A stretch of 64,000 nucleotides of DNA from Phaeosaccion multiseriatum (lineage: Eukaryota > Protista > Ochrophyta, other classes). Positions 1-20,951 of this stretch are shown here, piece by piece. The position numbers and the translations under genes were made by a program. The DNA is taken from contig OZ218958.1 of the NCBI GenBank assembly GCA_965112735.1, forward strand, positions 434,001 through 498,000, written 5' to 3'. The notes below the pieces were generated by a model. The model had not been told where the DNA came from and did no database searches. It saw only the letters and a program-made list of their open reading frames with translations. The number at the start of each line of letters is the position of its first letter. Position 1 is the first letter of the stretch.

Positions 1-1869
1 AAGGAAGGACGGAAGGAAGGAAGGAAGGAAGGAAGGAAGGAAGGAAGGAGGCTGGGAGGAAGCACATGTCAAGAGGGGTGGAGCAGAGCGCACCACCGTG
101 CTGCGGGGAAGCGCCCCATCGTTTCGTCGCTCCACGCCCTCCTGCGTTCTATCCGTAGCATAACCCTCTATCATCTCCCTCACCCCCTTCCTCCCTCCCT
201 CCCTTACCCCTCCCCTCCTCCCTCACCCCTTCATCCCTCCTCCCCCCTCACCTTCCATTGACGGCGACCATCCTGCCGCCCTCGACGAGCTCTGCCCTCC
301 TGTCCAGTGCCATCTCGATCGGCTTACCCCGCTCTCTCGCACTCGCTCACTCCCTCCCTCTGTATCGCCAAATCTCTTCCTCCCTCCCTCCCCTCCCTCA
401 CCGCAGCGGCTTGGCCGGAGTGCCGCTGTTGCCGCTGAGCTGTCACCGCCCCCCGCATCAGCAGCCCTTCCTCTCTGCAGCCCTCTGCCGCCCTTGCCCC
501 CTCTGCTGCTGCTGCTGGCGCTGCTGCTCATTCCGCCTCTCCACGGTGCGGGCGCTGCGAGCGCTGCCTGGCCTGCTGTCGAAGCAGAGCGGTGTACGCG
601 TCTGTGGCCCATGGACAGAGGGAGGGGGAGGGAGGAAAGGAGGGAGAGAGAGGGAGGGAGGGAGGGAAGAAAGGTGGGAGAGAGAGAGAGACGGGTGACG
701 AGAGCGAGAGAGAGAGGGAGAAGGAGGGAGAGGGAGGGAGAGAAAGCGAGAGAGAGTGATAAGAGAGAGCGAGAGCGACAGAGCGAGGGACAGAGAGAAA
801 GAAGGGCGAAGAGGACTCAATTGTTGATCATCCACCTTGGCGCCTTTGCGCCTTTGCCCCCCCAACATCCTGGTACCGACCCCCCTCCATCCCCACTCGG
901 CCTTGACAGCTTACGTCATGCTGTCATTCAGCCTTCAGCCCTCAGCTTTCATCTACAGCCACTTGCTTCCTTCCGTTCCTGCTGGACACGGTCAAAGTTG
1001 GGTATCGCGAGACCCATGCGCTGCAACAAGGCCGCGTGGGAGGAAGAGGAGAAGGAGGAGGAGGCACCCCTCACCCCTGCTTCCCCCATGGGCGCGCCTT
1101 CGACATTGACATCGGCATCGGCATCGGCATCGAGTTCGGTTTCGAGTTCGTCTACATGCTCTCCTCGCGACAGCATGCGGTTACCCACCCCCTCTCCTTC
1201 TCCCGCTGACGACGCGGAGCTCCTGTCTGCCCGGAGAATGAACGAGTTTGAGCGGCTGTGGGGGTGTGGGATATGGGGTATGGGAGGTGGGGTGGGCGGG
1301 GGAGGGGAAGGGAGTGGGCGAGTGGAGCTCTCCTGAAGAGGAGGTGAGGCTGTATCTAGCCGAAAGCAGGGGGCTCACAGCTTGGCTCGCTCACGAACCC
1401 CTCACGCAGTCGCCACCACTCACCTCAGTATTCGTGGTGCACCACGGGGCCAGGCCCTCGGAATCGGTCCAGGGGTGCTGGAAGAGCCGAGCCGTACCGG
1501 GGGAGGGAGGCTGATGCCCAGGCCCTGCAGGAGAAGGGAGGAGAAGCTGAAGGGCTCCGCTGGTCTCGCGGGAAGGAGATTCATCCATACAGCGGCTCCT
1601 GCTCCTGCTTGCCCTTCTCCTTTTCCTCCCACTGACCGTCCTCTGCTCTGCTTGCTCTCGCAGGAACTGCCCCCCCCCTGGGATCGGGATCTGTGAATCG
1701 GATCACCAAACCCAATGCCTTCAGAGGCCTCCATAACTAAACATATAGCGGGGAGGCCTGATAAGAAAGGCAGAGCGACCGATACTGCACAGGAGGCGCA
1801 GCAGGGAGAGGGCCTTCTGTAGCTCCCTTGTCAACACTACCGTCTCAAGGGAGGGGCCGCTTGCTCACC

Positions 1870-3549
1870 ATGGCGCAGCAGACAACGTTAACGCCCGAGG
1901 TACGACCTAGCGCCCACCTCTGAGACAGGTTTTCTTTGGAAAGCGTAGAGCAAGGCGAGGGTTCCTTCTGTGGATACGATAGCTGCGGTGGGAAGCTCAC
2001 GTGTCGACGGAACAGGCAGCTCTCCGTTGATCCCTTTTCATCCGGTGTATGCGCCTCTCCCCCCGCTTTTGAGAAAACAAATGGACTCTTGTGTTTCGAA
2101 GAGAGCAGAGCGAGGGAGGGTTTTGTGGTGGATAAGATGGCTGCGGTGGAATGCTCACGTATCGAAGCAGTGAGCAGCTTCCTGTTGATCCCTTACAGCC
2201 TATGTATATGCGTCTCTCCCCCCCATTCTCGTTTCCCTCAACAACACCAGGCGCGGCAGCTGGGGCAGGCCCTGGACAGATGGGAGAGCTTCCCCAATGT
2301 GGAAGCGCTGATTGTGAAGCTCATCGCCAAACATGGGAAAGCGAGTTTGGATCAGCCTATCGACGAAGAAGGATGTACCGCAATGCGTGTGGCTGCACAA
2401 CACGGTCGGCTGGATATCTTGGACCTTCTGCTGCGGGAAGGGGCCTCCTTCAGCACCAGACAGGGACCTCGCGGAACCACGCCGTTGATAGCCGCTAGCT
2501 TAATGGGACACGATCAGGTGGTGAGGCGGCTATTGGACATGGGAGCCCCTGTCGACCAAGCGGATGCCACAGGCGCTACTCCCTTGTTTTTCGCATCAGG
2601 AATGGGGCACTCCACGACAGTGCAGCAGCTGCTCTCGGCGCGTGCTAGTGTCGACTTGACAAAGGAAGACGGTTGGTTTGCCTCTCAGAACGGACATGGC
2701 TCTGTTGTAAGGCACCTCATCTCAGCCCAAGCGGATGTGGACAACGCAGATAATCGCGGGAGAACTCCGCTTCTGCAGGCATCGTTCTTTGGGCATGCGG
2801 GCATCGTACAGCAGCTCATCAGGGCCCACGCCAGCATCGACGAAGCTGACCTCGAAGGTGCTACCCCTCTTCACTTTGCCTGTCACGAAGGGCACGACGC
2901 CGTGGTGGAGAAGCTTCTCTCTGCGGGAGCACGTGTGGACAACGCAGATAATCGCGGGGCTACTCCGCTTCTGCAGGCATCGTTCAATGGGCATGCGGGC
3001 ATCGTACAGCAGCTCATCAGGGCCCACGCCAGCATCGACGAAGCTAACCTCCAAGGTGGTACCCCTCTTCACGGTGCCTGTCAGAAAGGGTATGACGCCG
3101 TGGTGGAGAAGCTTCTCTCTGCGGGAGCACGTGTGGACAAAAGGACCAACACTGGCGCTTCAGCCCTCTACCTGGCAGCGCACCATGGGCACGAGGCCGT
3201 CGTCGCTCGTCTCATCTCTGCGGGATCCCCCATCGATATCACGGAATCAGACGGTGCCACCCCTCTCCTTGCTGCCATCTCCAGAGACCACGGCACTGCG
3301 CGGCAGCTCCTCTCCGCCGGTGCTTCGGTGGACAAGGCCTTGGCTGGGGCACGGCGGTATCAGCTCGGCCGGGACATCGAGCAGCGACTTATGGAGGCGG
3401 CAGCAGCCTTCTTCCGGTCCCAAACCGCGCTGGACCTCATGCGCAGGACGGATCCGACCTTCGGCAAGGAGAGCGGAATCCTGCCGCTGGAGAGGCCCTG
3501 GAGTGTGGGGAGCGAGACGTGGGAGGGCATGGCGGAGGAGATGGGCTGA
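1870..3549 (+). CDS. Ankyrin-repeat protein copy 1 (intact); model join(1870..1899,2251..3549), ~10 ANK repeats
   Basis: Repeated G-x-TPL-xx-A-xxx-GH-xx-V-xx-LL motifs in ORF 1936..3549. Upstream mini-exon MAQQTTLTPE ends GAG|GTACGA and splices in phase 0 to caccag|GCG at 2251. The same exon/intron arrangement is conserved in all three copies. Confidence 0.85.
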
Positions 3550-4449
3550 GGGAGTAGGAGGGATGTGCGAGGTGGGGGCTGGTAGCTAGGGCAACGACGA
3601 CTTTGGCAACGAAAGAGTACCGCTCCAGCTTGCTCGCTTGCACCAGTCATGCAGCCCATGCGAGTGAGCCTGTACATCAGGATGCGATTTGAGAGAGAGA
3701 CTGCCCTCGGCCCACTGGCTTGGTGTAGGAGCGGTGAAGTGATTGCGATGCTCTGTCGCAAAGAGGAGTCGGAGAACAGGAGGTAGGGGGTCCGGGGGGG
3801 AGGGGAGTCACGTGTGTAGCTTACGGGACCAATGGATGCAGTGTATAGCTTGAGGGGGGGGGGGGGTGAGAGGGAAGTGAGCTCGTTTGAAGGGGGGAGA
3901 GTGTAATCCCGATGGATAGAGGCCGAGGGCTTCCTGGGTGGGGCATGCGGGCACAGCAAGTAGTCGTAGCTTATGAGAAGGGTATTGCCCTGCTAAACAC
4001 AGAGTGGTAACGGTGAAAGCCGGGTCCTTGGCGGGGGTTGTGCTCGTGTGGAGGCCTAAGGCAAGCTCCGCTGCACCCAGTGTATGCGTATTCAGTGACT
4101 GATGAAACACTTTACTATTTCCAAGATTACGTAATCTAACGAGATGAGCTGGTACTCAGTGACTTCCCCAGTGCTCTGCTACTTTTTGGTCTCTACCCCT
4201 TCGTCTTAAGAGAGCCCTGTCCTCGGCAATATCAAGTGAAGATCAGAAAGAAGCGTACGGGTGAGCCCTGTTTCCCAGCGGACGGAAGAGAGTAGCGGGG
4301 AGGCCGTGGATACGGAGTGCCGCAATTATATCCATCTGTGAATCGTGCTGCTTGCCTCTCGACCTTGGAGAAGTGGATACACTGCCTTTATGCTCTCTGG
4401 ACTTCGTTTATGGAATAGAGCTAGAAAGCGAATACGTGGGTGAGTGAGT

Positions 4450-7400
4450 GAGGATGGGTTCCTCGTCTACCTGCCCTGCCCGCCTCTTCCTCATCCTCTT
4501 CCTCATCCTCCTCATCCTACTCCTCCTCTTGCCCCTCCTCCTGCTACCCTCCCTCGTGGCGTCCCTCCCTCCTCTCCCCCACTACCTCCGCCTTCACCTC
4601 TCCCACCCGACTCACAGGGGCTGACTCCGGCCCAGCACCAACCCCGCTACCACCACCACTACCACCAATGATACCTCCTCCTTCTCTCCTGCCCGGCCCT
4701 GTGACGGGGCTTCCAATGGGCCTCTGCTGATACCCAAGTCCAATGCCTTGTCCTCCCCTCCCACCCCCTCTCCCCCTCCTGCTGTTGGTGATACTGAAGC
4801 CATTTGTGACGCCCCACTCCCCCTCCTCCTGAGTGTTGGAGCCATAGACAGAAACAGAGGCAGAGCTTCTCCCCCCCCCCCCCCAATGGCGAGATTGAGA
4901 ACGCTCCGATGACTCATGCTCCCCCCTCCCCCTGGCCCTCCACCCAGCGTATCCTCCTTCCGCCCCCTCCTCTCCGCACCGGGGGATCGCGAGGCCCGGA
5001 ACGATCGCAGACCGCTCCGCGCTGAGTCCAAGGGGGCTGGTCGAAGCTGTTGTACCGATCTGGAACGGTCCCTGTGCAAGGAAGGCACTCCGGTGGCGGC
5101 GGCGGGAGGACATTCTTCGATGATGCGTACTTGTTCTCTGGCAGCAGGGGAGAAAGGGGAAAACGGGTGGACAGAGGGGACGGGGAGGAGAGGGTGGAGA
5201 GGGTGGAGAGAGAGAAGAGAGGGGGGGGGAAGGTCGTCAGAGTGGACGCTAAGTCAATGAGTGGAAAGAAAGAAGGAAGGAAGGAAGCAAGGAAGGAAGG
5301 AAGGAAGGGAGGAAGGAAGGAAGGAAGGAAGGAAGGAAGGAAGGAAGGAAGGAAGGAAGGAAGGAAGGAAGGAAGGAAGGAAGGAAGGAAGGAGGGAGGG
5401 AGGGAGGGAGGGAGGGAGGGAGGGTGGAAGGAAGGAAGGAGGGAGGGAGGAAGCGTATGCCATGAGGGGTAGAGCATAGCGCACCACCGTGCTGTGGGGA
5501 GTCACCCCATCGTTTCGTCGGTCCATCTCCTCGTGCGTTGGATCCATAGCATAGCCTACCCTCTGCCATCTCCCTCACCCCCTCCCTCCCTCCCTCCCTC
5601 ACCCCTTCACCCCTCCTCCCCCCTCACCTTCCATTGACGGCGAACATCTTGCCGCCCTCAACGAGCTCTGCTCTCCTGTCCAGTGCCATCTGCATCTGCT
5701 TACCCCACTCGGCACATCGTCTCGAGATACAACAGTTGGTGGTTTAGCAGCAGCGGCCGTCACCGGCCTTGCTCCTCCTCTGGCTGTGCTGGATCCAACC
5801 AAGCCTGTCGCCGCGATGGCCGCTGCTCGCCGCTGCTGCTGCTTCTCCCGACGACTCCGAAGTTTGGCCTTTGGGACGAGAGATGGGGAGTAGAACGGAG
5901 GGGGACAGAGCCACGTAGAGCAGGGGATCGAGTAGACACGAATGTTGCGGCAGCGCAGCAGAGTAGTAGAGCACAAGTGGGACCGGGTACGGGGCGCGAG
6001 GGCATCAATCATACATTCAATACACACGTCGCTGTCTTCTCTGTTGCGAGACCGCACTGCCGTGCTGGCGGCGCTGCTACCCTTCTTCCTTCCTCCCCCC
6101 CCCCGCTCTCGCTACCTCACTTCCTTCCGCACTCATTCACTCCCTCGCGCTTTCACCCCCGCTCTCTCTACCTCACTCCCTCCGTCACTCTCGCACTCGC
6201 TCACTCCCTCCCTCTGTATCACCAACTCCCTCCCTCCCTCCCTCCCCTCCCTCACCGCAGAGGCTTGACCGGATTGCTGCTGTTGCTGCAGAACCGCCGC
6301 CGCCCCCCTCATCAGCAGCCCTCCCTCTCTGCCGCCCTAGCCCCCGCTGCGCTGCTGCTGCCGCTGCTCATTCCGCCTCTTCATGGCGCGGGCGCTGCGA
6401 GCGCTGCCTGGCCTGCTGTCGAAGCAGAGCGGTGTTCGCGTCTGTGGCCCACGGACAGAGAGAGGGGGAGGGAGGAAAGGAGGGAGAGAGAGGGAGAGGT
6501 AAAAGAGAGTCACAGCGATAGAGAGAGGGACAGAGAGAAAGAAGGGCGAAAAGGACTTAATTGTTGATCATCCAGTTTGGCGCCTTTGCGCCTTTGCCCC
6601 CCCAACATCCTGGTACCGACCCCCTTTCATCCCCACGCGGCCTTGACAGCTTACGTCATGCTGTAATTCAGCCTTCAGCCCTCAACTTTCATCTACAGAC
6701 ACTTGCTTCCTTCCGTACCTGCTCACCCTACCCCCCCTGGGTCTGCCCGGCGCCCCCCTCCATCGGAGGCCGAGCGCTGGCATGCCGAGTCGTCTGTCCC
6801 CGCCTAGAGTCCTCCCCTCTAGTCGCTCGGGTCCTCCGTCCTCCTGCGTAGTCCTTCTCCTCCTCACCCCTGAGCATCTCCAGCTCCCGCTGCAGGTCTT
6901 CATGCTGCTGCACACGGTCAAAGTTGGGTATCGCGATACCCATGCGCTGCAACAAGGCCGCGTGGGAGGCCGAGGAGAAGGAGGAGGAGGCACCCCTCAC
7001 CCCTGCTTCCCCCAGGGGTGCGCCTTCGACATTGACATTGACACCGGCATCGGCATCGAGTTCGGTTTCGAGTTCGTCTACATGCCCTCCTCGCGACGGC
7101 ATGCGGCTACCCACGCCGGCTCCTTCTCCCTTTCCTTCTCCCGCTGACGACGCGGAGCTCCTGTCTGCCCGGAGAATGAACGAGTTTGAGCGGCTGTGGG
7201 GGTGTGGGATATGGGGTATGGGGGGTGGGGTGGGCGGGGGAGGGGAAGCGAGTGGGCGAGTGGAGCTCTTCTTAAGAGGAACTGAGGCTGTAGCTAGCCG
7301 AAAGCAGGGGCCTCACAGCTTGGCTCGCTCACGCACCCCCCACGCACTCGCCACCACTCACCTCAGCATTCGTGGTGCTCCACGGGGCCAGGCCCTCGGA

Positions 7401-8656: not shown

Positions 8657-10137
8657 ATGGCACAGCAGGCAACTTTAACGCCCGAGGTACGACCTAGCGC
8701 CCTCTTGTAGGACGACTCACTGTGCTTCAGAGAGAAGAAGCGCAAGGAGAGAGGAGAGGATGGTAGACACGACAGATGCGGTAGAAAGCTCCCATATCGC
8801 TTCCGATGCAGTAACCAGCTTTCTGCTGGTCCCTGTACGTGTCTCTTCCCCGCGTTTGAAGCACAGTACGAGGCTGATGTGAATAAAAGCGAGGGGGGGC
8901 TTTGCGCGTACGATGGCTGCGGTGGGATGCGCACGTATCGAAGCAGTGAGCAGCTTCCTGTTGATCCCTTATAGCCTATGTTTATGCGTCTCTTCCCCCC
9001 ATTTCGCTCAACAACACCAGGCGCGGCAGCTGGGGCAGGCCCTGGACAGAGGAGACAGCTTCCCCACTGTGAAAGCGCTGATTCGGAAGCTCATCGCCAA
9101 ACGTGGTAAAGCAAGTTTGGATCAGCCTATCTACGAAGAAGGACATACCGCTATGCTTGTGGCTGCACAATACGGTCGGCTGGATGTCATGGACCTTCTG
9201 CTGCGGGAAGGGGCCTCTTTCAGCACCAGAGGGGGACCCGTTAGAAACACGCCATTGATAATAGCTAGCGCCCAGGGACACGATCAGGTGGTGAGGCGGC
9301 TGTTGGTTATGGGAGCCCCTGTCGACCAAGCGGATGCCAAAGGAGTTACTCCCTTGATTGTAGCGTCGGAAAGGGGGCACTCCACGACAGTGCAGCAGCT
9401 GCTCTCGGCGCGCGCTAGTGTCGACTTGGCCGACGAAAAGGGGCTTTCTCCGATTTGGATGGCCTCTCAGAACGGACATAGCTCTGTTGTAAGGCACCTC
9501 ATCTCAGCCAAAGCGGATGTGAACCACGCAGATAATCTCGGGAGAACTCCGCTTCATCAGGCATCGCTCAATGGGCATGCGGGCATCGTACAGCAGCTCA
9601 TCAGGGCCCACGCCATCATCGACAAAGCTAACGTCCACGGTGTCACTCCTCTTTCACCTTGCCTGTCAGGAAGGGCACGACGCCGTGGTGGGAAAGCTTC
9701 TCTCTGCGGGAGCACGTGTGGACAAAAGGACCAACACTGGCGCTTCACCCCTCTACCTTGCAGCGCACCAGGGGCAGGAGGCCATCGTCGCTCGTCTCAT
9801 CTCTGCGGGATCCCCCATCGATATCCCGGCATCAGACGGTGACACCCCTCTCTTTGTTGCCATCTTCAGAGACCACCACGGCACTGCGCGGCAGCTCCTC
9901 TCGGCCGATGCTTCGGTGGACAAGGCCTTGGCTTCGGCACGGCTGCTTAGTGTTGAGTCTGAGTTTGAGCAACGAATTATGGAGGCGGCAGCAGCCTTCT
10001 CCCGGTCCCAAACCGCGCTGGACCTCATGCGAAGGACGGATCCGACCTTCGGCAAGGAGAGCGGAATCCTGCCGCTGGAGAGGCCCTGGAGTGTGGGGAG
10101 CGAGACGTGGGAGAGCATGGCGGAGGAGATGGGCTGA
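8657..10137 (+). pseudogene. Ankyrin-repeat gene copy 2; join(8657..8686,9021..10137) with a +1 frameshift at ~9652-9654 (pseudogene or sequencing error)
   Basis: Paralogous to copy 1. 'cct ctt tca cct' has one extra T relative to 'cct ctt cac' in copy 1, which splits the ORF into 8913..9842 and 9571..10137. Confidence 0.8.
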
Positions 10138-11222: not shown

Positions 11223-14200
11223 GGATGGATTCCTCGTCTACCTGCCCTGCTCGCCTCGTCCTCATCCTCTTCCTCCTACTCCTCCTCTTGCCCCTCCCCT
11301 CCCTCGCGGCGTCCCTCCCTCCTCTCCCCCACTACCCCCGCCTTCACCCCTCCCACCCGACTCACAGGGGCTGACGCCGGCCCAGCACCAACCCGACCAC
11401 TACCACCACTGATACCTCCTCCTTTCCTCTCCTGCCCGTCCCTGTGACGGGGCTTCCAATGGGCCTCTGCTGATACCCAAGCCCAATGCCTTGTCCTCCC
11501 CTCCCACCCCCTCTCCCCCTCCTGCTGTTGGTGATACTGAAGCCATTTGTGACGCCCCACTCCCCCTCCTCCTGAGTGTTGGAGCCATAGACAGAAACAG
11601 AGGCAGAGCTTCTCCCCCCCCCCCCCAATGGCGAGATTGAGAACGCTCCGATGGCTCATGCTCCCCCCTCCCCCTGGCCCTCCACCCAGCGTATCCTCCT
11701 TCCGCCCCCTCCCCTCCGCCCCGGGGGATCGCGAGGCCCGGAACGATCGCAGACCGCTCCGCGCTGAGTCCAAGGGGGTAGGGCGAAGCTGTTGTACCGA
11801 TCTGGAACGGTCTCTGTGCAAGGAAGGCACTCCGGTGGCGGCGGCGGGAGGAAATTCTTCGATGATGCGTACTTGTTCTCTGGCAGCAGAGGAGAAAGGG
11901 GGTAAAGGGTGGACAGAGGTAAGGGGGAGGAGAGGGTGGAGAGGGTGGAGAGAGAGAAGAGAGGGGGAGGAAAGGTCGTCAGGGTGGACGCTAAGTCAAT
12001 GAGTGGAAGGAAAGAAGGAAGGAAGGAAGGAAGGAAGGAAGGAAGGAAGGAAGGAAGGAAGGAAGGAAGGAAGGAAGGAAGGAAGGAAGGAAGGAAGGAG
12101 GTAGAGAGGAAGGAAGGAGGTAGAGAGGAAGCATATGTCGCGAGGGGTAGAGCAGAGCGCACCACCGTGCTGTGGGGAGTCACCCCATCGTTTCGTCGGT
12201 GCATCCCCTCGTGCGTTGGATCCATGGCATACTCTATCCTCTGCCATATCCCTCACCCCCCCCCTCCGTCACCCCTTCACCCCTCCTCCCCCCTCACCTT
12301 CCATTGACGGCGAACATCTTGCCGCCCTCGATGAGCTCTGCCCTCCTGTCCAGTGCCATCTCGATCTGCTTACCCCACTCCAGCACATCGTCTCGAGATA
12401 CAACAGTTGGTGGTACAGCAGCAACAGCCGTCACCGGCCTTGCTCCTCCTCTGGCCGTGCTGAATCCCACCACGTCTTCGCCGCGATGGCCGCTGCTCGC
12501 CGCTGCTGCTTCTTCTCCCGACGACTCCGAAGCTTGGCCTTTGCGATGAGAGATGGGGAGTAGAAAGGAGTGGGATAGAGCCGTGTAGAGCAGGATGGAG
12601 CAGACATGAATGGTGCGGCAGAGCAGCAGAGGAGCAGAGCACACGTGGGACCGGGTACGGGGTGCGAGGGCATCAATTACTCATTCAATACACACGTCGC
12701 TGTCTTCTCTGCTGCGAGACCTCACTGCCGTGCTGGCGACGCTGCTATCCTTCTTCCTTCCTCCCCCCCCCCGCTCTCGCTCCATCACTGCCTCCCGCAC
12801 CCATTCACTCCCACTCGCTCACACCCTCCCTCTATATCACCAACTCCCTCCCTCCCTCCCTCCCCTCCCTCACCGCAGAGGCTTGGCCGGATTGCCGCTG
12901 TTGCTGCAGAACCGCCGCCGCCCCCCGCATCAGCAGCCCTCCCTCTCTGCCGCCCTTGCCCCCTCTGCGCTGCTGCTGCCTCTGTTCGTTCCGCCTCTTC
13001 ATGGCGCGGGCGCTGAGAGCGCTGCCTGGCCTGCTGTCGAAGCAGAGCGGTGTTCGCGTCCGTGGCCCACGGACGGAGGGAGGGGAAGGGGGGAAAGGAG
13101 AGAGAGAGAGGGAGGGAGGAAAGATGGGAGAGAGAGGCAGGTGACGAGAGCGAGGGAGAGGGGAGAGAGAGGGAGAAGGAGGGAGAGAAAGCGAGAGAGG
13201 GAGAGATAAGAGAGAGCGAGAGCGAAGATAGAGGGGCAGAGAGAAAGAAGGACGAAAAGGACTCAATTGTTCATCATCCACCTTGGCGCCTTTGCGCCTT
13301 TGCCTACCTCCCGGTCTGAATTCAGAGGGTAGGTATCAGTCTAGCAAAAGCTCGACTTCTAACACCCCCAACATCCTGGTACCGACCCCCCTCCATCCCC
13401 ACTCGGCCTTGACAGCTGCCGTCATGCTATCATTCAGCCTTCAGCCCTCAACTTTCATCCACAGCCACTTGCTTCCTTCCGTACCTCCTCACCCTACCCC
13501 CCCTGGGTCTGCCCGGCGCCCCCCTCCATCGGAGGCCGAGCGCTGGCAGTCGCCAGGCCGAGTCGTCTGTCCCCGCCTAGAGCCCTCCCCTCTAGTCGCT
13601 CGGGTCCTCCCTCCTCCTGCGTAGTCCTTCTCCTCCTCCCCCTGAGCATCTCCAGCTCCCGCTGCAGGTCCTCATACTGCTGCACACGGCCAAAGTTGGG
13701 TATCGCGAGACCCATGCGCTGCAACAAGGCCGCGTGGGAGGACGAGGAGAAGGAGGAGGAGGCACCCCTCACCCCTGCTTCCTCCAGGGGCGCGCCTTCG
13801 ACATCGACATTGACATCGGCATCGGCATCGAGTTCGGTTTCGAGTTCGTCTGCAGGCTCTCCTCGCGACGGCATGAGCTCCTGTCTGCCCGGAGATTGAA
13901 CGAGTTTGAGCGGCTGTGGGGGTGTGGGATATGGGATATGGGAGGTGGGGTGGGCGGGGGAGGGGAAGGGAGTGGGCGAGTGGAGCTCTCCTGAAGAGGA
14001 GGTGAGGCTGTAGCTAGCCGAAAGCAGGGGGATCACAGCTTAGCTCGCTCACGCACCCCCCACGCACTCGCCACCACTCACCTCAGCATTCGTGGTGCTC
14101 CACGGGGCCAGGCCCACGGAATCGGTCCAGGGGTGCTGGAAGAGCAGAGCCGTACCGGGGGAGGGAGTGCTGATGCCCAGGCCCTGCAAGAGAATGAGGA

Positions 14201-15311
14201 CTCCGCTGGTCTCACGGGCGGGAGAGGAGTCCATACAGCGGCTCCTGCTCCTGCTTGCCCTTCTCCTTCTCCTCCCACTGCTCCTGCTGCTCCTGCTTCT
14301 TGCGCTGCTAACTGCCGCGGATGCTGCTGGAGCTTCTGCTCGTCCACTCCCCCCTGCTCTTTCTCCTCCAGCGGTTGCTACTGCTGCCCCAAAGCCCCCC
14401 TTGTTCTGTGCCCCGCATCCTCTATTGACCCGTCCTTCTCCCTCGTCATTCTCGGATGTTCCCAGCGGCATCAAGACTGGGGAAGTCGTGGTGCGAACTG
14501 GACACGTGCGGAGGAGGGGCACAGTCTCTTGGTAGTCATCACAAAGACGTCTTCCATTGCGGGCGATAGCCCCTTCACGCCCCCGGCCGGATGAGGAGCC
14601 GAGGCGCTCATGGGAGTCCGGTTGAGGCTTCGCCGTGAAGCCGTGTGGATGGAAGCCATGAAGGAAAGGAGGGGGAGGGGGTGGGGAGATTTTGGGGGGG
14701 AAGAAGGCAGAGAGGTTAGGCCGGTAAGTACCGCGAGTAGAAGCGGACATGATGCGAGGAGGGGAATGACAGCCTCCAGTAAGTGCATAGAGCAAAGGAC
14801 GCAGTACCTTGCCTAGCCTTTCCTCACCTTTTGAGACTCGTGGGAAAAGCTGGGTGGACCGGAGGAGAAACGTGGAGGAGCGGATGAGCCCATCACGCCT
14901 AGCAACAGCCCGGATGGAGAAGAAGCGGCAGGAGCAGCAGTAGGAGCCGCGTCGCAGCAGCAGCCACGAGAATGAGCTCCAAAGGCTGGGCCTTGCAAGT
15001 GTCCTGGTCGATCATTCTCGTCGTTGCCCTGAGCTGGCTGCGGTCTGCTTGATCGTGTGTCGCGTAGCCATTCCACCTCCTCTGGCTGCGTGTTGCGTGT
15101 GCTGCCTACGCCATCTCCAAGGTTAATTGAGGGGCCTCCCCCTGGAGATCGGGATCTGTGATTTGAGTATTCAAGCCCCCCAATGCCTCCAGAGGCCTCC
15201 AACAGCTTTATAACACGGGGAGGGCCGTGACAGGCAGCACAACCGACTACTGCGCCCACTGTGGGCCCCTTGTCAGCACTACCATCTCAAGGGCGGGGCC
15301 GCTTGCTCACC

Positions 15312-16020
15312 ATGGCGCAGCAGGCAACGTTAACGCCCGAGGTACGACCTAGCGCCCTCTTGTAGGACGACTCACTGTGCTTCAGAGAGAAGTGCAAGAC
15401 GAGAGGGGAGGATGGTAGACACGACAGATGCGGTAGGCAGCTCCCATAACGCTCCCGAGGCAGTGACGAGCTTTCTGCTGATCCCTGTACGTGTCTCTCC
15501 TCCGCTTTTGAAGCACAGTGAGAGGAGGACCGGTGTGAACAAAAGCGAGGGGGGGGCTTTGCGGATACGATCCCGGAGGTGGGATGCTAACGTATCGAAG
15601 CAGTCAGCACCTTCCTGCTGATCCCTTTTATCCGATGTATGTGCCGTCTCTTTCCCCCGACATCGTTTCCCTCAACAACGCCAGGCGCGGCAGCTGGGGC
15701 AGGCCCTGAAGAGCAAAAGCAGCTTCCCCAATGTGAGAGCGCTGATTGGGAAGCTCATCGCCAAACATGGGAAAGCAAGTTTGGATCAGCCTATCTACGA
15801 AGAAGGATATACCGCAATGGGCAGGGCTGCACAACACGGTCGGCTGGATGTCATGGACCTTCTGCTGCGGGAAGGGGCCTCCTTCAGCACCAGACAGGGA
15901 CCTCGCGGAAGCACGCCGTTGATAGCCGCTAGCTTAATGGGACACGATCAGGTGGTGAGGCGGCTGTTGGACATGGAGCCCCTGTCCACCAAGCGGTTGC
16001 CGGAGAATTTACTCCCTTGT
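15312..16020 (+). pseudogene. Ankyrin-repeat gene copy 3, truncated; join(15312..15341,15685..~16020)
   Basis: Same mini-exon and acceptor as copies 1 and 2. A 1-bp deletion at ~15975 (atggag vs atgggag), then homology ends at ~16020 after about two repeats. Confidence 0.85.
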
Positions 16021-16022
16021 TG

Positions 16023-16127
16023 TTGGGAGTGCGAGGACCGCTCTACCAAACCGACGAGGAGCGAGGACATCGCCGCTGAGCTGACGCGGCTTCTGATGGA
16101 GACCGGGCTGCCGGAATCGACGACTAT
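16023..16127 (+). repeat. Left copy of an imperfect ~90-100-bp direct repeat (right copy 19719..19809)
   Basis: 46-bp identical core cgccgctgagctgacgcggcttctgatggagaccgggctgccggaa at 16071-16116 and 19756-19801, with degenerate similarity on both sides. Confidence 0.9.
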
Positions 16128-17275: not shown

Positions 17276-19115
17276 TCAATCTTGAGCAGGCGGGAGGCAC
17301 CCCTCCTCTGCGCTTCCCCAGCTGCAGCGGAAGGCGGAGGTACTCCAGCACTCACATGCAGCCCGTGTGGTGAAAGCCCCGCAGCTGCCGAGCCATCCCA
17401 GCGCAGGGCAGTCCAGCGTGCCCACCGGGGGCGGAGTGGGAGAGGAGGGAGGAGGGGTAGGGGGCGATGTAGGGGCACCGTCAGGCGGTGTGGGTGCGGG
17501 CGTGGGACTGCTACTTGAGTCTGCGCTGCGGCACCCGCCAGCGGCCCAGGAGCACTTGAAGGTGGAGGCCGCCCAGCACGAGCAGGAAGGAGCGTCGGTG
17601 AAGGCGGCGCAGTCGCCGCGCCAGCCCAGCTGCGAACAGTCTACCGCCGCCGGAGATGGAGCCGCGGTCGTGGTGGCATGGGCGGGAGTGGGACTGCTAC
17701 TCGAGTCTGCGCTGCGGCACCCGCCAGCGGCCCAGGAGCACTTGAAGGTGGAGGCCGCCCAGCACGAGCAGGAAGGAGCGTCGGTGAAGGCGGCGCAGTC
17801 GCAGCCCAGCTGCGAGCAGTCTACCGCCACCGAAGATGGAGCCGCGGTCGTGGTGGCAGGGGCGGGAGTAGGAGTGGAGGTTGGCGGAGACGTGGAAGGG
17901 GCCGGGGCCGGAGTAGGAGTGGACGTTGGCCCAGCCGTAGAAGGGGCCGGCGTTGGAGAGCCGGTGGACGATGAGCCGTCCGCGCAGGGGATGGAGGAGT
18001 AGACCCCCTCACCCCCGCAGAAGCGGCACACCTGATTGCCCCCTACCCCACAGCCCAGGCAGGCTGGGTCATCCTTCTCACATTCCGTGCAGGCCACGTC
18101 AAGGAGGCACGGCTGAGAGGACGAGCACATGGAGGAGCAGTAGTACGGGTCTTTGCAGAAGGAGACGAGTCTCTGATTGTTTACCCAACCTTCTAAGTAA
18201 GGGTCGTAGTACTCCAAGTCGTTGAAGTCAACAAGGAGGCACGGCGGATAGTTGGCGCAGATGGAGGAGCAGTAGTAGGGCGCTTCGCAGGAGGTGACGA
18301 CGCTCTCCACCACACCCATGTAAAAAGGGTCTATGTCGTCAATGCTGGCCAGGCGGGCGGTGTCGAAGGAAGGCACGCCGGGACCGATCACTGCGGAGGA
18401 GTGGCCGAGGGTATCGAAGGGAGGAGTAAGGGAGGGAGGGGGGGGGAGGAAGTTTCTTGCGATCACTCACTGGGCAGAACTCACCCACAAAGTAGGAGGA
18501 GTAGTCAGGCGTGCACAGGTGAAGGACTTCTCGGTCACACGTGCGGACGCAGGAGGTGACTCCCATGGCGATCGCGGCAAGGGTGCGTTCCATACGGTAA
18601 TAACCGCCGGAGGAGCAAACGGCTCCTCCGCGAGTTCCGGTCCACCGCACGCGGACATCACCATCCTCCCCTCCGGCTCCGTTGCCGCACTTGACGGAAA
18701 TGTCCACCGGCGCTGGGAAGCCAGCGTCCACCAGCAGTCGCGTTAGTTGAACATCGCTGTCCACCTCTCCCGTGCCCGTCTCTGCTGTCTTCCACGTGAA
18801 GGAGGTGAGGTCGAGTGCCCAAGGCTCAAGCTCGATTCTGCAGAAGTTGGCGCCTCTGCCGGTGGTGCCAGTAGTAGTAGTGGTGGTGGGGACGTCCAAG
18901 ATGACCTGAGCAGCCCGGACGAAGGCCGAGCAGCTGGACCCTGAGTAGTCGATGGAGAGCGCGTCCGCCACCTCGCATTCAACCTGCTGGGCGTCGCTCT
19001 CTTCAAGGCAGTCCACGGAGTCGTCGGGGAACGAGAACGTCAGTTCCACCCTGCTGCTGGCCACCACAGCAAGCCGCTGCAGCACCAGCAGCAGAATCGC
19101 TGCATTCATCATCAT
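17276..19115 (-). CDS. Secreted Cys-rich modular protein with Pro/Thr/Ser stalk; complement(join(17276..18390,18485..19115))
   Basis: Signal-peptide-like start MMMNAAILLLVLQRLAVVASS. A 94-bp phase-1 intron (G|GTGAGT ... tccgcag|TG) joins ORFs 18339..19157 and 17276..18466 in frame. Contains two PYYCSSxC repeats, a GCxxxGxxxCRFCG module, a PTPAP stalk and three 6-Cys modules. Confidence 0.8.
17500..17866. repeat. Intragenic tandem duplication (~180 bp x2) encoding the DCSQLG..CAAFTDAPSCSCWAASTFKCSWAAGGC module
   Basis: Near-identical DNA blocks start at ~17500 and ~17684. Confidence 0.9.
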
Positions 19116-20545: not shown

Positions 20546-20951
20546 ACCCTTGGACAAGGTTATCTGATTACAGGAGTTGGTTTATGACTGATTACGGCCG
20601 GCGCCAGCCGGCCTGATTACTGATTGTGGCGCCGGCCGGGCCTGATTACTGATTATGACCGGCGCCAGCCGGCCTGATTACTGATTATATGGCGCCAGCC
20701 GGCCTGATTAGCGCACACTGTAATCGGCCCTGGACAAGGTTATCTGATTACTGATTACGGCCGGCGCAGCCGGCCTGATTATGATTACAGCCGGCGCCAG
20801 CCAGCCGGGCCTGATTACTGATTACAGCCGGCGCCAGCCGGGCCTGATTACTGATTATGACCGGCGCCAGCCGGCCTGATTACTGATTATATGGCGCCAG
20901 CCGGCCTGATTAGCGCACACTGTACAGTAACCTTGTCCAGGGTGGACAAGG
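20546..20951. mobile_element. Inverted-repeat-bounded minisatellite (possible MITE/foldback-type element)
   Basis: ACCCT(T)GGACAAGGTTA at 20546 and CCCTGGACAAGGTTA at 20728; the reverse complement TAACCTTGTCCAGGGT lies at 20928-20943. The interior is ~30-bp units of ctgattactgatta + gccggcgccagccggc. No TSD found. Confidence 0.6.

Follow-up and report, generated by a model that had tools for sequence, protein, structure and literature searches.

Fungal NLR receptors carry internal repeats of nearly identical DNA that are polymorphic in number and undergo concerted evolution both within and between paralogues (PMC4986451, 2014; Chevanne et al. 2010, PMC2873952). In their ankyrin repeats, positive selection falls on a few codons, whose residues line the concave binding side of the solenoid (PMC4986451). 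Among the algae, the candidate receptors of the LRR-ROCO and NB-ARC-TPR types in Ectocarpus reportedly have one repeat per exon and evolve by exon shuffling; variation in repeat number and signs of positive selection are also reported for them, and they have been proposed to constitute a recognition repertoire (Zambounis et al. 2012, PMC3341825). A designed counterpart is provided by the DARPin libraries, in which variable surface positions of the hairpin and the inner helix are set into a fixed framework (PMC8683736). Here we describe an in-frame duplication of two ankyrin repeats in a gene of the ochrophyte alga Phaeosaccion multiseriatum, along with the large family of paralogues to which this gene belongs. 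Of the known systems, the fungal NLR repeats come closest to this family. The repeats of TAL effectors and other arrays under concerted evolution likewise consist of nearly identical repeat DNA, with differences in a few specificity codons and changes in number that come about by recombination.

A family of ankyrin repeat proteins with a constant tail

The window, that is, the whole stretch of 64,000 nucleotides analysed here, belongs to contig 9 of an assembly that totals 67 Mb over 22 contigs and that also served as the genome searched. The features discussed below are collected in Table 1. The first of the ankyrin genes in the window, copy 1, is probably a gene with eukaryotic features, composed of a short exon 1, a GT..AG intron, and an exon 2 that holds the ankyrin repeats. 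The donor GTACGA following the ATG of exon 1 is present in 21 of the 22 aligned paralogues, the same alignment shows conservation of the CAG acceptor and of the TGA stop, and the exon 1 sequences of copies 1 and 2 differ mostly by silent changes. The intron contains an imperfect duplication of 130 bp (1935-2064 versus 2094-2223, 76% identity), and like segments are seen in the introns of other copies.

Table 1. Positions of the ankyrin gene copies and of their parts in the window
Feature	Positions	Strand	Remarks
Copy 1, exon 1 (predicted)	1870..1899	+	ATG plus 9 codons; ATG in 22/22 aligned paralogues
Copy 1, intron	1900..2250	+	GT..AG; donor and acceptor conserved among aligned paralogues
Copy 1, exon 2	2251..3549	+	432 codons plus TGA; helical N-terminal cap, 10 ankyrin repeats, conserved helical tail
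Site of in-frame 4-codon deletion	2673..2674	+	In copy 1 only; four extra residues in 22/22 other aligned paralogues
9-bp direct repeat	2736..2744, 2934-2942, 3132-3140	+	Read from the sequence
Unit A	2737..2934	+	Two ankyrin repeats; exon-2 product residues 163-228
Unit B	2935..3132	+	Tandem copy of unit A; residues 229-294; more derived copy
Constant C-terminal tail	3331..3546	+	72 residues; nearly invariant in paralogue alignment
Copy 2	8657..10137	+	Single unit at 9519-9717; frameshifted by an additional T within the run 9652-9654
Copy 3	15259..16024	+	5' fragment only: upstream flank, exon 1, intron, first repeats; 80% identity

All protein analyses were carried out on the exon-2 product (432 residues) alone. 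In Pfam, this product matches Ank_2 (2.5e-58, 195 bits against a cut-off of 27.3) and Ank (3.4e-57, 188 bits against a cut-off of 21.1, in 7 stretches); only ankyrin families were recovered over its 432 residues, with no NACHT, NB-ARC, or effector domain. An AlphaFold2 model, built from an input alignment of 23 paralogues, has a mean pLDDT of 86.2 and a pTM of 0.79; in it, ten ankyrin helix pairs stand between a helical cap at the N-terminus and a helical tail at the C-terminus. The best matches of the model in Foldseek are to AnkB R13-24 (TM 0.77-0.81, rmsd 2.6 Å), and DARPins are also among them. Judged both by the family thresholds and by the modelled solenoid fold, copy 1 thus encodes a predicted ankyrin repeat protein (clan Ank: PF00023, PF12796). 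Its frame is open through all 432 codons. The four-codon deletion peculiar to copy 1 falls where the inner helix of the fourth ankyrin repeat begins, and the model confidence is lower there (pLDDT of about 70 for residues 131-140).

When units A and B of this gene (described below) were used to search the genome at the DNA level, at least 56 matches were found on six contigs. With the constant tail as query, 245 candidates gave at least 150 matches, which are spread over many contigs as tandem arrays, and the exon-2 frame is intact in 25 of the first 30 loci. In the model, the tail begins as a long helix and finishes with a stretch of low confidence. Outside this genome, a search of 5.8 billion proteins, in the length range that it allows, detected no relative of the tail, and the search with the whole protein returned generic ankyrin proteins only, at identities of 35% or less. 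Together, these searches suggest that the ankyrin and constant-tail genes form a very large, lineage-specific, and mostly intact family disposed in tandem arrays.

A typical member of the family has a short exon 1, one intron, and an exon 2 with about eight or more ankyrin repeats and the 72-residue tail. The exon-2 products, which usually have 369-374 residues, also come in sizes of 432, 437, 469-471, 503-504, 536, 570, and 636 residues. These sizes step by 33 or 66 residues, which is to say by one or two repeats, indicating that change in repeat number is routine in the family. One such case is offered by four paralogues on contig 15 (L010, L014, L019, and L022), which share a 99-residue insertion of three repeats after repeat 3; its last repeat is a hybrid between two of the types, and its copies differ mainly at binding-face positions. 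Marked by this hybrid repeat, the insertion records an independent unequal-crossover event at another site. The paralogues on contig 2 have longer repeat arrays, with 85-88% DNA identity.

The other copies in the window are both broken. In copy 2, the open reading frame at 8913..9842 stops early and the tail is readable in another frame; it could be a young pseudogene, or the frameshift could be a homopolymer error of the assembly. In a blastn search with window positions 1801-3700 as the query, copy 3 matched only 1817-2591 (query bases 17-791), and no further part of the gene was found after it. Long (GGAA)n microsatellites at 1-49, 5263-5453, and 12005-12118 border tandem units of 5-7 kb that carry the ankyrin genes, and the spacers between these genes contain long purine-rich or pyrimidine-rich tracts of low complexity. 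Downstream of the ankyrin array are further tandem repeats, at 17496-17873 (186 bp x 2.1) and at 20587-20912 (33 bp x 10).

The tandem units of copy 1 and the placement of their differences

Tandem Repeats Finder reports a 198-bp period at 2736-3140 in exon 2 of copy 1, with 2.0 copies, 93% matches, and no indels. In a codon-by-codon comparison, this array resolves into units A and B, two tandem copies of an in-frame 66-codon unit that corresponds to two ankyrin repeats. The array is made up of 2 x 198 + 9 bp, and the same 9-bp direct repeat stands at the start of A, at the junction of A with B, and at the end of B, an arrangement consistent with slippage, or with unequal exchange, that kept in phase with the repeats. 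The two units are identical at 57 of 66 residues (86%), over a block of 132 residues; elsewhere in copy 1, repeats of one type agree at no more than 13 of 33 residues.

Units A and B differ at 14 bases, which are distributed over nine of the 66 codons. An initial annotation of this region had described the tandem copies, the presence of a single unit in copy 2, and nine amino acid replacements unaccompanied by any purely synonymous codon change, and had placed these at or beside the variable positions of ankyrin repeats. Each of these observations is borne out, and the pairwise alignment returns exactly the same list of replacements from A to B: R to A at codon 9 (AGA/GCT), F to N at codon 18 (TTT/AAT), D to N at codon 38, E to Q at codon 40, A to G at codon 42, F to G at codon 47 (TTT/GGT), H to Q at codon 50, E to K at codon 51, and H to Y at codon 53 (CAC/TAT). 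All nine changed codons are thus non-synonymous, and four of them differ at two or three bases. The base changes comprise five transitions and nine transversions, with every class of change represented, and an A is found in either copy at only six of the 14 differences.

The absence of synonymous codon changes nevertheless says little by itself. The codons that differ at several bases hold about 1.7 synonymous steps. By the Nei-Gojobori method, there are 1.67 synonymous steps over 48.5 sites versus 12.33 non-synonymous steps over 149.5 sites. For the A/B pair alone, the resulting omega of about 2.5 is not a significant excess of dN over dS (one-sided Fisher p=0.28), and we therefore do not take it as evidence of selection on the pair.

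The placement of the changes is more informative. In the AlphaFold2 model, in which units A and B are predicted with a pLDDT of 93-97, the changed residues (171, 180, 200, 202, 204, 209, 212, 213, and 215) either directly precede the inner helices 173-180 and 206-213 or form part of them, except residue 215, which is in the turn that follows 206-213; all nine thus occupy loops, inner helices, or a turn, and none falls in the outer helices 183-191 and 216-224. From 29 other paralogous units, with A and B left aside, 14 of the 66 codons were defined as hypervariable, and seven of the nine changed codons are among these 14 (hypergeometric p=1.3e-4). The packing of the 14 differences into nine codons is likewise greater than in simulation (p=2.5e-4).

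Origin and divergence of the duplicated unit

The explanation that we favour, with a probability of about 0.75, is an in-frame duplication of the unit followed by the selection and exchange that operate throughout the family, with no need for special mutation machinery. Under this explanation, a two-repeat unit of 198 bp in copy 1 was duplicated in frame, which raised the number of repeats from the usual eight to ten; the event was most likely an unequal crossing-over, or a slippage during replication, that respected the period of the repeats. The two copies would then have diverged under diversifying selection on codons whose residues form the concave binding face, in the hairpin loops and inner helices, and recombination or gene conversion of short tracts among paralogues would have shuffled codon variants while keeping the framework uniform, silent sites included. 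Several observations count against it: the non-significant test on the A/B pair, the two usually conserved positions altered in unit B (D38N and H53Y, the latter an H in 42 of 45 units), the unique deletion of four codons, the failure to find a donor for the whole variable block of B, and the raised silent-type diversity at hypervariable codons (both described below).

Evidence for such a regime comes from the family as a whole. Across 31 units, many framework codons of the 198-bp unit are represented by one codon only, as against up to ten at the hypervariable ones. In a comparison of 20 close paralogues (190 pairs, 68 hypervariable codons), hypervariable dN reaches 0.53 versus a framework dS of 0.089, an intron divergence of 0.185, and a 3'UTR divergence of 0.08; hypervariable dN exceeds intron divergence in all 190 pairs, and the binding-face codons diverge three to six times as much as introns and silent sites. 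The transition/transversion ratio is 1.9 at framework third positions and 0.52 in the hypervariable codons, and the 5:9 proportion between A and B agrees with the latter. Strong positive selection combined with variation in repeat number, as proposed in the initial annotation, is thus supported for the family, with its steps of 33 or 66 residues and its three- to six-fold rates, and not for the A/B pair taken alone, which offers too few sites for a dN above dS to become apparent.

Within hypervariable codons, diversity is highest at the first position (0.53) and lower at the second (0.33) and third (0.29), and at codon 47 the third base remains T through nine amino acids, as expected from selection on amino acids. 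Diversity of the silent type is about 2.3 times higher at hypervariable than at framework codons. We read this as a sign of older allelic lineages held by selection. A mutational contribution, in the form of a modestly higher local mutation rate, could also produce the excess and keeps a small probability.

Paralogues also recombine. In a four-gamete, PHI-like test, incompatibility rises from 0.31 to 0.44 across 500 bp (permutation p<=0.0005), and the lower frequency of incompatibilities between near sites indicates the exchange of short tracts among paralogues. A particular instance is seen in the upstream neighbour of copy 1 (L018, G000:C9:429648-432853). The two genes have three differences in the first 500 bp, and their upstream flank, exon 1, and intron (window 1800-2300) are 99.4-100% identical, the intron itself being at 99.4%. 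Their coding regions, on the other hand, show about 100 differences, including ten purely silent codons, with 86-90% identity over the coding sequence that precedes the unit and the unit itself, and 95.6% over the part that follows toward the tail. A sharp mosaic boundary of this kind near the start of exon 2 would be expected after a recent conversion or crossover. Nor is the pattern seen between A and B exceptional in this family, given that 13 other pairs of units, each from different genes, combine zero silent framework differences with 5-12 hypervariable ones.

The relationship between the two units can be followed in their framework codons. A and B are sisters in trees built from all sites (ultrafast bootstrap 96, SH-aLRT 85) and from framework codons only (96 and 76), and in the latter the terminal branch of unit A has zero length, with unit B as the derived copy. 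They have in common every silent framework variant, the rare E36, and seven of the 14 hypervariable codons. In a comparison with 45 other units, made after 20 further family loci had been added, it emerged that, of the 18 states shown by A and B at their nine changed codons, 15 occur elsewhere in the family. The three unique states (TTT at codon 18 in A; GGT at codon 42 and TAT at codon 53 in B) remained unique once these loci were sampled. AGA and GCT at codon 9 are both common alleles, found in 13 and 14 of the 45 units, respectively, and their three-base difference is accordingly more likely to have been imported by exchange than to have arisen by three new mutations. The nine changes probably divide, then, between new mutation, represented by the three unique states, and imported variants such as AGA/GCT.

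A genome search for a donor of the variable 66-bp block of unit B gave unit A as the best non-self match (86%), all others being at 82% or less; for the corresponding block of unit A, the best match outside itself is 91%, in one paralogue. With these values, an origin of B by one long conversion event, with a surviving paralogue as the donor, is rejected. Conversion from other paralogues, which the initial annotation had suggested along with a genome search for donor repeats, is supported as a process of the family, and paralogues do carry most of the codon states concerned; it is not demonstrated for the A/B pair, for whose B block no whole donor was found.

Some of the same evidence would also suit an unequal crossover that joined templates already diverged, whether alleles or very recent paralogues, so that the nine differences would predate the duplication. 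Recombination among paralogues is active, AGA and GCT are both old and common family alleles, and in the second repeat, unit A is nearer to L008 and L016 (82 of 87 bases each) than to B (78 of 87). Under the favoured explanation, the last of these would point to extra change on B. Previously diverged templates are an unlikely source of the two units, as A and B remain sisters on framework codons only, share their silent framework variants, E36, and half of their hypervariable codons, and as the variable block of B is present in no sampled paralogue; templates that were alleles retain some probability.

Relaxed constraint could account for part of the A/B divergence if copy 1 were a decaying gene. 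As a full account, in which copy 1 drifts toward a pseudogene and the lack of silent changes is an accident of sampling, it is quite improbable. It would agree with a dN/dS for the whole unit that does not differ significantly from 1, with the four-codon deletion and the two conserved positions altered in B, and with the broken state of the neighbouring copies 2 and 3; moreover, with a silent codon share in the family of 15-30%, none in nine has a probability of about 0.04-0.23. Uniform drift, however, predicts neither the concentration of the changes on the binding face nor their clustering within codons, and the 432-codon frame is intact and the duplicated region is modelled with high confidence.

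The juxtaposition of intact and broken genes in the array raises the very doubtful prospect of a cassette system, in which conversion of short tracts, possibly somatic or induced, would move binding-face codons among copies. If this were true, units A and B would represent an intermediate stage, caught in the sequence, of a process resembling the diversification of antibodies by gene conversion in birds. More generally, a programmed or targeted diversification, by somatic or germline mutation or by cassette conversion at binding-face codons with the broken neighbours as possible donors, could be invoked for the multi-base changes in four of the nine codons, the raised silent-type diversity of hypervariable codons, the short conversion tracts, and the broken copies that adjoin intact ones. 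Targeted diversification was among the proposals of the initial annotation, and we consider it highly improbable: the 14 changes show no bias for adenine or any other single base, the first and second codon positions vary most, with the third base T constant at codon 47, the genome holds no donor for the B block, and fixed germline differences among many paralogues suffice to explain the pattern. We know of no programmed diversification mechanism for ankyrin genes. A DGR-like, adenine-biased templated hypermutation was considered separately and rejected, because so few of the differences involve A and all classes of change are present.

An assembly artefact, with the sequences of two haplotypes or of a pair of paralogous units mistakenly placed one after the other, is scarcely credible. 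Repeat-rich arrays are hard to assemble and copy 2 probably contains a homopolymer error, but the addition in copy 1 measures precisely one period, keeps the frame, and has clean ends; size differences in whole steps of 33 or 66 residues are seen among many paralogues; and A and B are 7% different, between flanks that are single-copy and continuous.

Comparison with known repeat protein systems

An analogy may be drawn at several levels between the copy 1 family and the repeat arrays of fungal NLRs. Variation in repeat number, exchange among paralogues, and diversifying selection at codons of the binding surface are found in both. The polymorphism in repeat number by which such arrays are recognised is seen here between paralogues, whose exon-2 products range over 369-636 residues. 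The degree of internal identity used for the NLR repeats, at least 85% over at least 100 residues, is reached in copy 1 by the A/B block only; in this family, high identity is instead found between equivalent repeats of different genes. The architectures also differ. Copy 1 has neither a NOD nor an N-terminal effector domain, for which its ten-codon exon 1 would be too small, and given the lack of NACHT, NB-ARC, and effector domains, it is not an NLR. What is constant in the present family is a 72-residue tail without known relatives, and the host is not a fungus.

The nearest algal precedent is offered by the Ectocarpus receptors, which reportedly also form a large family of repeat proteins with variable repeat number and signs of positive selection. 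They would differ from the present family both in the repeats concerned, LRR or TPR there and ankyrin repeats here, and in the means by which these are varied: all repeats of the copy 1 family are encoded in one exon, and their change proceeds through in-frame unequal exchange and divergence at the level of codons.

In terms of the surface involved, the copy 1 family resembles DARPins: variation is confined to the same surface over a fixed framework, in a natural family rather than in a designed one. The classic DARPin library of Binz et al. 2003 was reportedly randomised at positions 2, 3, 5, 13, 14, and 33. Six of the nine A/B changes presumably fall on such positions (3, 5, 13, and 14), and the other three would be beside them (1, 10, and 16). 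The variable set of the family differs from that of the designed libraries in that it also includes repeat positions 1, 9, 10, and 32. TAL effector repeats, the further case of concerted evolution mentioned at the outset, have a fold and a ligand unlike those of the ankyrin family.

Viewed against these systems, the duplication itself is a small and ordinary product of a known evolutionary regime acting in a lineage-specific family. Its significance is that the A/B pair provides a dated snapshot of how a new binding surface is built: a pair of repeats is inserted, probably through unequal exchange, and its binding face changes as the scaffold stays identical. We infer that the family constitutes a repertoire of binding proteins, whose constant tail would link them to a shared partner. 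It is a good candidate for an algal recognition repertoire and a natural source of ankyrin binders. The process at work would be the same as in the immune-type receptors of fungi, here in a distant eukaryote and in a protein without any known signalling domain.
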